From the NCBI RefSeq assembly GCF_006345805.1, contig NW_021832554.1:1-57579 (forward strand): a DNA stretch of 57,579 nt, read 5' to 3'. This DNA comes from Octopus sinensis. Lineage: Eukaryota. The position numbers were made by a program, and so were the translations under genes. Shown one piece after another: positions 25,390 through 47,203 of this stretch (positions within the stretch are counted from its first letter, which is position 1; each line of letters opens with the position of its first letter). Below the pieces are notes generated by a model. It had not been told where the DNA came from. It ran no database searches and saw only the letters and a program-made list of their open reading frames with translations.

Positions 25390-26603
25390 TTAACCCTTCT
25401 GTTACCAACTCGGCTGAAACCGGTTCTGGCTCTGCAGTACAAATGTCTTGTTTTCATAAGTTTTGAATTAAAATCTTCCACCAAACCTTAGTCACAATTT
25501 ATGTTCCTAACACTAGCTGAATGATAACTAAGTTATTTTACTAAATTCTTTGTTATATTTAAAATTAATTGAAAGAAACACAGAGCATCTCAACAGAAAT
25601 ATGGTAACAAAAGGGTTCAAGTCACCATGATATTTTTAACCCTTTCGATGCCAACCCGGCTGAAACCACCTCTGGCTCTGCAGTACAAATGTCTTGTTTT
25701 CATAAGTTCTGAATTAAAATCTTCCACCAATCCTTAGTCACAATTTATGTTCCTAACACTAGCTGAATGATAACTAAGTTATTTTACTGAATTCTTTGTT
25801 ATATTTAAAATTAATTGAAAGAAACACAGAGCATCTCAACAGAAATATGGTAACAAAAGGGTTCAAGTCACCATGATATTTTTAACCCTTTCGATACCAA
25901 CCTGGCTGAAACCACCTCTGGCTCTGTAGTACAAATGTCTTGTTTTCATAAGTTTTGAATTAAAATCTTCCACCAAACCTTAGTCACAATTTATGTTCCT
26001 AACACTAGCTGAATGATAACTAAGTTATTTTACTGAATTCTTTGTTATATTTAAAATTAATTGAAAGAAACACAGAGCATCTCAACAGAAATATGGTAAC
26101 AAAAGGGTTCAAGTCACCATGAGATTTTTAACCCTTTCGATACCAACCTGGCTGAAACCACCTCTGGCTCTGTAGTACAAATGTCTTGTTTTCATAAGTT
26201 TTGAATTAAAATCTTCCACCAAACCTTAGTCACAATTTATATTCCTAACACTAGCTTAATGATACCTAAGTTATTTTACTAAATTCTTTGTTATATTTAA
26301 AATTAATTGAAAGAAACACAGAACATCTCAACAGAAATATGGTAACAAAAGGGTTCAAGTCACCATGATATTTTTAACCCTTTTGATACCAACCCGGCTG
26401 AAAGCAACTCCGGCTCTGTAGTACAAATGTCTTGTTCTCATAAGTTCTGAATTAAAATCTTCCACCAAATCTTATTCACAATTTATGTTCCTAACACCAG
26501 CTTAATGATAACTAAGTTATTTTACTAAATTCTTTCTTATATTTAAAATTAATTGAGAGAAACACAGAGCATCTCAACAGAAATACGGTAACAAAAGGGT
26601 TAA
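25390..26603. repeat. Five-copy tandem array of a 222-bp piggyBac-type MITE (246-bp unit)
   Basis: TTAA|CCCTT...AAGGG|TTAA at the outer ends; 14-bp TIR CCCTTTYGTTACCA; 16-nt spacer AGTCACCATGATATTT between units. Confidence 0.9.
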
Positions 26604-26910
26604 CAATTCCATCGGTGTGTCTGACACAGCATCCATCTAGTCTCATCCCTCTATGCTGCATCTTCAATGTTACTTTTGGTAGTCCCTGGTATAGGTCAGC
26701 GTTTGTTGTCTGACTCTTCCAGGAGACACTGAGTGCCATTCTAAGCATCCTCATATAACAACCGTCCAACTGCTTCTTCAATGCTTTAGTGAGCATCCAT
26801 GTTTCAGCCCCGTATGGAAGAACAGACTCCACTGTTGCCAGAAACAAAATCATTTTCAATTTCCTTGCTAACTTTGAACTCCAAACCTTTCGCAATTTGT
26901 GACATGAGCA

Positions 26911-45000: not shown

Positions 45001-47203
45001 AAAATATCATGGTGACTTGAACCCTTTTGTTACCATATTTCTGTTGAGATGCTCTGTGTTTCTTTCAATTAATTTTAAATATAACAAAGAATTTAGTAAA
45101 ATAACTTAGTTATCATTAAGCTAGTGTTAGGAACATAAATTGTGACTAAGGTTTGATGGAAGATTTTAATTCAAAACTTATGAAAACAAGATATTTGTAC
45201 TACAGAGCCAGAGGTGGTTTCATCAGCCGGTTGGTATCAAAAGGGTTAAAATATCATGGTGACTTGAACCCTTTTGTTACCATATTTCTGTTGAGATGCT
45301 CTGTGTTTCTTTCAATTAATTTTAAATATAACAAAGAATTTAGTAAAATAACTTAGTTATCATTCAGCTAGTGTTAGGAACATAAATTGTGACTAAGGTT
45401 TGGTGGAAGATTTTAATTCAAAACTTATGAAAACAAGATATTTGTATTACAGAGCCAGAGGTGGTTTCAGCCGGGTTGGTATCAAAAGGGTTAAAATATC
45501 ATGGTGACTTTAACCCTTTTGTTACCATTTTTCTGTTGAGATGCTCTGTCTTTCTTTAAATTACTTTAAATATAACAAAGAATTTAGTAAAATAACTTAG
45601 TTATCATTCAGCTAGTGTTAGGAACATAAATTGTGACTAAGGTTGGTGGAAGATTTTAATTAAAAACTTATGAAAACAAGATATTTGTACTACAGAGCCA
45701 GGGTGGTTTCAGCCGGTTGGTATCAAAAGGGTTAAAATATCATGGTGACTTGAACCCTTTTGTTACCATATTTCTGTTGAGATGCTCTGTGTTTCTTTCA
45801 ATTAATTTTAAATATAACAAAGAATTTAGTAAAATAACTTAGTTATCATTAAGCTAGTGTTAGGAACATAAATTGTGACTAAGGTTTGATGGAAGATTTT
45901 AATTCAAAACTTATGAAAACAAGATATTTGTACTACAGAGCCAGAGGTGGTTTCAGCCGGGTTGGTATCAAAAGGGTTAAAATATCATGGTGACTTGAAC
46001 CCTTTTGTTACCATATTTCTGTTGAGATGCTCTGTGTTTCTTTCAATTAATTTTAAATATAACAAAGAATTAGTAAAATAACTTAGTTTCATTAAGCTAG
46101 TGGTAGGAACATAAATTGTGACTAAGGTTTGATGGAAGATTTTAATTCAAAACTTATGAAAACAAGATATTTGTACTACAGAGCCAGAGGTGGTTTCAGC
46201 CGGGTTGGTATCAAAAGGGTTAAAATATCATGGTGACTTGAACCCTTTTGTTACCATATTTCTGTTGAGATGCTCTGTGTTTCTTTCAATTAATTTTAAA
46301 TATAACAAAGAATTTAGTAAAATAACTTAGTTATCATTCAGCTAGTGTTAGGAACATAAATTGTGACTAAGGTTGGTGGAAGAGATTTAATTCAAAACTT
46401 ATGAAAACAAGATATTTGTATTACAGAGCCAGAGGTGGTTCAGCCCGGGTTGGTATCAAAAGGGTTAAAATATCATGGTGACTTGAACCCTTTTGTTACC
46501 ATATTTCTGTTGAGATGCTCTGTGTTCTTTCAATTAATTTTAAATATAACAAAGATTTAGTAAAATAACTTAGTTATCATTAAGCTAGTGTTAGGAACAT
46601 AAATTGTGACTAAGGTTTGGTAGAAGATTTTAATTCAAAACTTAGGAAAACAAGACATTTGTACTACAGAACCAGAGCCGGTTTCAGCCGGGTTGGTAAC
46701 GAAAGGGTTAAAAATATCATGGTGACTTGAACCCTTTTGTTACCATATTTCTGTTGAGATGCTCTGTGTTTCTTTCAATTAATTTTAAATATAACAAAGA
46801 ATTTAGTAAAATAACTTAGTTATCATTCAGCTAGTGTTAGGAACATAAATTGTGACTAAGGTTTGGTGGAAGATTTTAATTCAAAACTTATGAAAACAAG
46901 ACATTTGTATTACAGAGCCAGGGGTGGTTTCAGCCGGGTTGGTAACAAAAGGGTTAAAAATATCATGGTGACTTGAACCCTTTTGTTACCATATTTCTGT
47001 TGAGATGCTCTGTGTTTCTTTCAATTAATTTTAAATATAACAAAGAATTTAGTAAAATAACTTAGTTATCATTCAGCTAGTGTTAGGAACATAAATTGTG
47101 ACTAAGATTTGGTGGAAGATTTTAATTCAAAACTTATGAAAACAAGATATTTGTACTACAGAGCCAGGGGTGGCTTCAGCCAGGTTGGTAACAAAAGGGT
47201 TAA
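42092..47203. repeat. ~21-copy satellite of the same 246-bp piggyBac-type MITE unit, opposite orientation to 25390-26603
   Basis: Unit TTAA/TGAA-CCCTTTTGTTACCA...TGGTAACGAAAGGG-TTAA-AAATATCATGGTGACT; GGG ends at 42315 and 47197 give 20 intervals of ~245 bp. Confidence 0.93.

Follow-up and report, generated by a model that had tools for sequence, protein, structure and literature searches.

In a 57,579-base stretch of the Octopus sinensis genome (assembly GCF_006345805.1, contig NW_021832554.1, positions 1–57,579; hereafter the window), a 222-bp MITE (miniature inverted-repeat transposable element) of piggyBac type is present as three head-to-tail arrays, with unit numbers of five, 21, and two. 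One TTAA target duplication encloses each array, the host sequence being different in every case, and all three carry the same short spacer between units, which is foreign to every target. Insertion of multimers as units is the simplest account of this anatomy. We therefore favor macrotransposition, in which a MITE multimer moved through its outer ends and was subsequently remodeled by unequal exchange, as the best explanation and, judging from the sequence, a rather likely one.

The array structure itself is secure. An earlier note on this DNA had described the three arrays, and its unit counts were borne out by Tandem Repeats Finder (TRF), by blastn, and by a unit-by-unit parse of all 28 MITE units. 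TRF reported 25390–26601 (period 246, 4.9 copies, 95% matches) and 42097–47204 (period 245, 20.9 copies, 97% matches), and blastn with one unit as query against the window recovered both of these regions together with a two-unit array at 52164–52631 on the minus strand and weak partial matches beside the latter. When parsed, the five-unit array (A5; 25390–26603, plus strand) consists of TTAA, five 222-bp MITEs (25394–25615, 25640–25861, 25886–26107, 26132–26353, and 26378–26599), and a closing TTAA. The 21-unit array (A21; 42092–47203, minus strand) holds MITEs of 217–224 bp each, and the dimer (A2; 52162–52631, minus strand) has its two MITEs at 52627–52408 and 52386–52166. No solo copy of the family was found elsewhere in the window in the same blastn search. 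The 246-bp period given in the earlier note holds, as do its TTAA, its 222-bp MITE, and its 16-nt spacer, but the sum had left out a second tetranucleotide; the complete unit is TTAA + 222 + TTMA + 16.

All four internal joints of A5 read GGG-TTCA-AGTCACCATGATATTT-TTAA-CCC, with a G variant in one spacer copy, and TTAA is found at every 5' junction and at both outer flanks. In A21, the internal 3' junctions are TTCA in 16 of 20 cases and TTAA in the other four (units 7, 18, 19, and 20), the 5' junctions and both outer flanks are again all TTAA, the spacer is that of A5 at 15–16 nt, and the last unit terminates in GGC rather than GGG. The joint of A2 is GGG-TTAA-AGTCACCATATTT-TAAA-CCC, its spacer being the shared one with a 3-nt deletion; TTAA is present at both outer flanks, and the first base of the left end is mutated (TCCTTTC). 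The internal TTCA of A5 and of most of A21, and the outer TTAA of A5, had been noted before. With a head-to-tail unit of at least 100 bp and local homogenization, A21 has the properties of satellite DNA, as a short array of 5.1 kb in total.

Each array interrupts a host element from which the empty site can be rebuilt. On the minus strand, A5 splits an RTE-like reverse-transcriptase C-terminal frame into an upstream part (26602–26895), which ends ...CCVRHTDGIV, and a downstream part (25206–25391), which reads NKLVLW, a stop, and then PTEGRNRRGK.... Taking out the array and one TTAA gives GGA ATT GTT AAC AAG (G-I-V-N-K), the restored frame that the earlier note had pointed out. The stop-free upstream piece has 4,229 relatives among 1.84 billion representative proteins (1,206 of them at E ≤ 1e-10). 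With the two window pieces entered into the alignment as separate fragments, they abut with neither gap nor overlap on eight relatives that reach past the junction (in P0002, RHPEEIA / NKLVLWEPTEGSRNRG), so that removal of A5 and one TTAA makes the RTE-type C-terminal region colinear again. A search for other octopus DNA through RTE relatives led to 15 matches only, from metagenome assemblies and at ≤74% identity, which were unusable.

A21 lies within a member of a family of short interspersed nuclear elements (SINEs). Its flanks at 41896–42091 and 47204–47403 join as one contiguous SINE around a single TTAA, and the rebuilt empty site aligns contiguously to SINE copies at 26938–27299, where TTAA is present, and at 27163–27517, where the corresponding motif is TAAA. 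The host of A2 is B1, one unit of an older series of MITE relatives (B-type units), and the neighboring unit B2 (52735–53059) provides a paralogous empty site: the rebuilt sequence GTTAATTAATAATGACAAAG matches ATTAATTAATAATGACAAAA in B2.

Every array ends precisely at MITE termini with TTAA on either side, and the rebuilt sites in the RTE frame, the SINE, and the B-type element show a single target duplication per array. The spacer, common to A5 and A21 and present as a deletion variant in A2, is missing from all three empty sites and is not local DNA, again in line with the earlier note. Because it is foreign to every target yet common to all arrays, a solo copy followed by local duplication cannot have yielded any of them, and each site must have received at least MITE-spacer-MITE. 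Segmental duplication, considered beforehand as a possible source of the shared spacer, is contradicted by the flanks of A5, A21, and A2, which are mutually unrelated and therefore mark three separate insertions. The flanks also fit together at each array, which rules out chimeric assembly at the arrays. At all three loci, left and right ends from different MITE copies enclose internal DNA within one duplication, which is the structure of a macrotransposon.

Assignment of the MITE to the non-autonomous piggyBac-type elements is supported by its TTAA duplication and its CCC/GGG termini, the signature on which the earlier note had also relied. The duplication is found at three independent sites with rebuilt empty sites, and the termini follow 5'-CCC...GGG-3' with a short terminal inverted repeat (TIR; CCCTTYYGWTACCA / TGGTAACRAAAGGG in A5 unit 1). 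In this first A5 unit, the TIR is 14 nt long and 93% complementary (CCCTTCTGTTACCA / TGGTAACAAAAGGG). A cognate autonomous element, encoding a DDE_Tnp_1_7 transposase, would be expected to carry matching ends (CCCTTTCGTTACC). No Pfam match to a transposase domain was obtained in ten selected open reading frames (ORFs) of ≥110 aa out of 60 listed, the remaining long ORFs, mostly over simple repeats, having been left unscanned. DNA pattern scans for the junction and the MITE body returned zero matches in metagenome, prokaryote-genome, and viral collections, the junction-spanning 68-aa frame (45150–45353) had no candidate in an index of 5.8 billion proteins, no listing of the TIR sequences was found in the literature searched, and Rfam reported no RNA family within the window.

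In its right-TIR region, the 3'-terminal unit of each array (26378–26599, 42096–42317, and 52166–52386) is unlike every internal unit. Unit 21 of A21 and unit 2 of A2 keep the CpG form ACG, the internal units all being TATGGTAACAAAAGGG, and TAC replaces TAT in A2 unit 2 and in A5 unit 5, the most diverged unit of A5. These divergent terminal units could be an edge effect or the leftover of an older resident copy.

The route that we propose begins at an ancestral locus, where the 222-bp MITE would have become a head-to-tail repeat. The likely origin of this repeat is a pair of copies inserted in the same orientation, with 16 bp between their TTAA sites, and subsequent unequal exchange, which would give a repeat unit of MITE, TTAA, 16-nt spacer, and TTAA. 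In a multimer of such units, one side would retain a valid left end and the opposite side a valid right end, and a piggyBac-family transposase supplied in trans could cut and paste the whole block, internal spacers included, with one new TTAA duplication. Movement of the whole block would explain both the single duplication and the travelling spacer, and the contig, 57 kb long, would record no fewer than three such events. Once inserted, an array could change length in place through unequal exchange or break repair, leading in one case to the 21-unit array. Disabled internal ends would not be required, as an n-mer with all ends usable has n(n+1)/2 correctly ordered left–right pairs, only n of which are monomeric (by calculation, 21 of 231 for n = 21), and end pairing by looping may be less favorable for a stiff 222-bp monomer than for a longer block. 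The absence of solos of this family from the window, though another piggyBac-type family has solos there, was also counted in favor of block movement. This mode of spread is well supported, but we infer it, as we do its component steps, namely integration by a transposase, use of the outer ends, and the origin of the first dimer.

A maximum-likelihood tree of the 28 units separates two lineages (support 83/89). A5_1 clusters with A21 units 3 and 12–21 and A5_2–5 with A21 units 1, 2, and 4–11, and not one of 200 bootstrap trees recovers A5 as monophyletic. The two lineages must therefore predate the separation of A5 from A21, with A5 having inherited both, and no fewer than two different units must have seeded A5. 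The units of A2 are sisters (91/92) and have lineage variants in common along their full length. A direct derivation of A5 from A21 units 3–7, a TTAA-bounded stretch with seemingly shared rare variants, was considered and rejected, as its summed differences (68) are among the worst of 17 registers (best, 56).

Within A21, neighboring units differ by a mean of 5.0 substitutions, compared with 8.4 over all pairs, a value reached in 0 of 10,000 permutations, and there are zero substitutions among units 14–17 and likewise among units 18–20. The similarity of neighbors and the identical blocks indicate that A21 grew in place, and the 5.1-kb array is largely a local expansion. Its unit order, in which unit 4 resembles unit 8, units 5–6 resemble units 9–11, and unit 3 resembles unit 12, suggests internal higher-order duplication.

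Several points weigh against macrotransposition. The evidence comes from one contig of one assembly, and the end product is the same for integration of a multimer and for solo insertion followed by array-templated repair. Usable internal ends should also free monomers, and none are seen, the 57-kb window being a small sample. A21 contains many 1-nt deletions, located in homopolymer runs, and these deletions, including the 15- versus 16-nt spacer, as well as the copy number of the array, may partly reflect sequencing or assembly errors. Units differ by ∼5% in A5 and A21 and by 8–10% in A2, there is no sign of present activity, and A21 carries a mutation in its outer right end (GGC).

In a broader version of macrotransposition, this octopus lineage would carry a mobile satellite that normally transposes as the multimer rather than the monomer; ready-made arrays would be seeded at fresh TTAA sites, frequently close by, and would grow into satellites thereafter. 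The habit would be old, to judge by the diverged B-type series beside the dimer, which is likewise head-to-tail, retains TTAA-CCC left ends, has lost its internal right ends, and has a tail similar to the spacer. We put this forward tentatively and consider it possible rather than probable. If true, transposase-driven macrotransposition would be a general route for the dispersal of satellite DNA through a genome.

Among other explanations, the one that survives best supposes that a solo MITE inserted at each site and that a break was later repaired, through synthesis-dependent annealing, with an array at another locus (the neighboring 21-mer, for instance) as out-of-register template, importing units and spacers. 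Such repair would leave the same outer TIRs, single duplication, and spacers of foreign origin; all three arrays fall within 27 kb, so that templates are close; and the distinct right-TIR region of the 3'-terminal units (ACG and TAC versus TATGGTAACAAAAGGG) could be the remnant of a resident solo. Terminal units are, however, expected to lag in homogenization anyway, as is usual at array edges. Two rare events would be needed at each of three sites, in a window that holds no solo of the family, and the lineage variants shared by the A2 units would demand that solo and template came from the same sublineage. The internal units of A5, moreover, are 5–9 differences away from their nearest A21 units, so they were not recently copied from A21. 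On balance, solo insertion with conversion seems unlikely.

Less probable still is the mechanism that the earlier note had advanced, namely that the change from TTAA to TTCA beside internal right ends disables them, obliging the transposase to use the outer right end and making the multimer the preferred mobile form. The distribution of TTCA fits this idea, being confined to internal right-end junctions (4/4 in A5 and 16/20 in A21) while left-end junctions and outer flanks are all TTAA, and the older B-type series has no recognizable internal right ends. Its premise, that excision depends on flanking TTAA, is nevertheless contradicted for the Trichoplusia ni piggyBac, which does not require a TTAA flank for excision and whose TTAA-less elements integrate with comparable efficiency (Chen et al., PMC7351741), leaving no established basis for TTCA disabling internal right ends. 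The outer TTAA is merely the new target duplication, and the A2 dimer has TTAA inside and still only one duplication. Both unit lineages and the two large arrays share TTCA, whereas TTAA persists in the older A2 dimer, a distribution that fits a single neutral change spread by array turnover, and TTCA is probably such a variant. What stands of the earlier proposal is that multimers were inserted as units, as the simplest account, and that A21 then grew locally; the preference for outer ends driven by TTCA is not supported.

Array segments could also have been released as extrachromosomal circles, possibly amplified by rolling-circle replication; the transposase would then cut a circle at the pair of ends on either side of a single spacer and integrate it, which would yield n MITEs, n−1 spacers, TIR-precise ends, and one TTAA duplication, as observed, and circle-based spread has been reviewed as a route from transposons to satellites (PMC12628747). 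This differs from macrotransposition in the donor molecule only, has no direct evidence, and would predict identical units from rolling-circle amplification, whereas A5 mixes two lineages; we regard it as very unlikely. Misassembly of a repeat-rich long-read contig, to which the many 1-base homopolymer deletions and the identical-unit blocks of A21 might point, is the least credible explanation, as the flanks of every array form one contiguous host element, unlike a chimeric join, and only copy number could be wrong.

The region from 51.8 to 55.4 kb is a nest of TTAA elements. The B-type units (51838–53166, plus strand) are head-to-tail, ∼70% identical to the MITE, and each starts with TTAA-CCCTTT; no recognizable 3' TIR was found in them. 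A further B-type relative lies at 54623–54790 (plus strand), and the tail-to-left-end joint recurs at 54.68 kb. The B-type tail, ...TTCCATCATRTTT... (written ...TTCCATCATRTTTSTM before each TTAA), is faintly like the 16-nt spacer of the younger arrays: a shuffle test of spacer against tail (CCATGATATTT versus CCATCATATTT) returned p = 0.007 with the best tail and p = 0.03 when summed. Homology of the spacer to the B-type tails is suggestive only on this comparison, and tandem organization in this element group may be old.

A third piggyBac-type MITE family is represented in the same nest by a clean solo at 54791–55042 (plus strand) that is flanked by TTAA at either end and whose 11-nt TIR is perfect (CCCTTTCACTG / CAGTGAAAGGG), by a degenerate second copy in the same orientation ∼110 bp downstream (55149–55389, plus strand), and by partial copies at 51838 and 53167. 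Elsewhere in the window, tandem arrays of a SINE-like repeat with a 184-bp period are found at 6007–6372, 16608–17343, 24709–25080, 27404–27870, 32058–32426, and 56146–57577, the last of which (7.8 copies, 98%) reaches the contig end. Conversion of interspersed repeats to tandem arrays seems common in this genome.

An intact, single-exon LRRC59-like gene (40351–41535, plus strand; 394 aa) has its stop codon 557 bp upstream of A21; the encoded protein combines LRR_8 domains with a coiled region rich in charge and a hydrophobic segment at the C terminus. The exact protein is on record only on VCDQ01005687.1 (GCA_006345805.1), which is this contig and is covered in full by the window. A search for orthologous loci through this protein gave best relatives of ≤63% identity in other taxa, and a cluster look-up was empty. 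An ORF at 20451–20969 (minus strand) contains a zf-RVT domain (reverse-transcriptase zinc-binding region; E = 2.8e-08) and probably represents part of another, unrelated non-LTR (long terminal repeat) retrotransposon.

How satellite repeats spread to new chromosomal sites is a long-standing question, usually answered by circles, unequal exchange, or transport as cargo in Helitrons and MITEs. The anatomy described here is unusually clean evidence for another route, in which an array of whole transposons with working outer ends would be pasted as a block and then grow, and the three insertions with rebuildable empty sites make this route directly testable. In annotation, the choice of tool decides whether such arrays are labeled “piggyBac” or “tandem repeat.” Satellites derived from MITEs, MITEs that hold internal satellites, and expanding transposon dimers (hobo) are already described, and our literature search found no report of piggyBac-type whole-MITE multimers that move as blocks or that recur at several sites with their own duplications.

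Compared with known piggyBac-superfamily MITEs, the octopus family has the same TTAA duplication, CCC/GGG termini, short TIR, and lack of coding capacity, but in the window it occurs as multimers only. Several MITEs carry an internal satellite, including miDNA4 of Xenopus tropicalis (Tc1/mariner), Xstir, and pearl/CvA of bivalves, and the piggyBac element Pokey/mPok of Daphnia contains ∼200-bp repeats from the ribosomal DNA spacer (PMC12628747, PMC9659126, PMC10946416). As in these elements, a tandem repeat of the octopus is carried to new loci inside non-autonomous elements bounded by TIRs, beyond which it can expand as satellite DNA. Their repeat, however, is internal cargo distinct from the ends, whereas the octopus repeat is the entire MITE with both TIRs, together with its earlier target duplication and 16 nt taken up from the flank, which makes every unit itself a potential transposon.

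In Drosophila, according to the work of McGurk and Barbash as summarized in PMC12628747, transposon dimers formed by double insertion seed satellites, and hobo has grown to 16 tandem copies. The octopus arrays are likewise whole-element head-to-tail repeats that would stem from nearby insertions and later expansion, but the Drosophila arrays are described in that summary as expanding in place, whereas in octopus one array type, together with its captured spacer, recurs at three sites that have separate duplications.

Linked copies of Ac in maize are documented to move en bloc, and the same has been proposed for tandem P copies (PMC9910405, PMC1562414). As in Ac/fAc macrotransposons, where one copy contributes its outer 5' end and a second copy its outer 3' end to what acts as one transposon, the DNA between the outer ends appears to have been carried along in octopus with a single duplication, movement here being read from insertion-site anatomy. 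Unlike the Ac/fAc and P cases, the octopus arrays consist of many identical miniature copies 24 bp apart, belong to piggyBac rather than to hAT or P, and have a satellite-like product.

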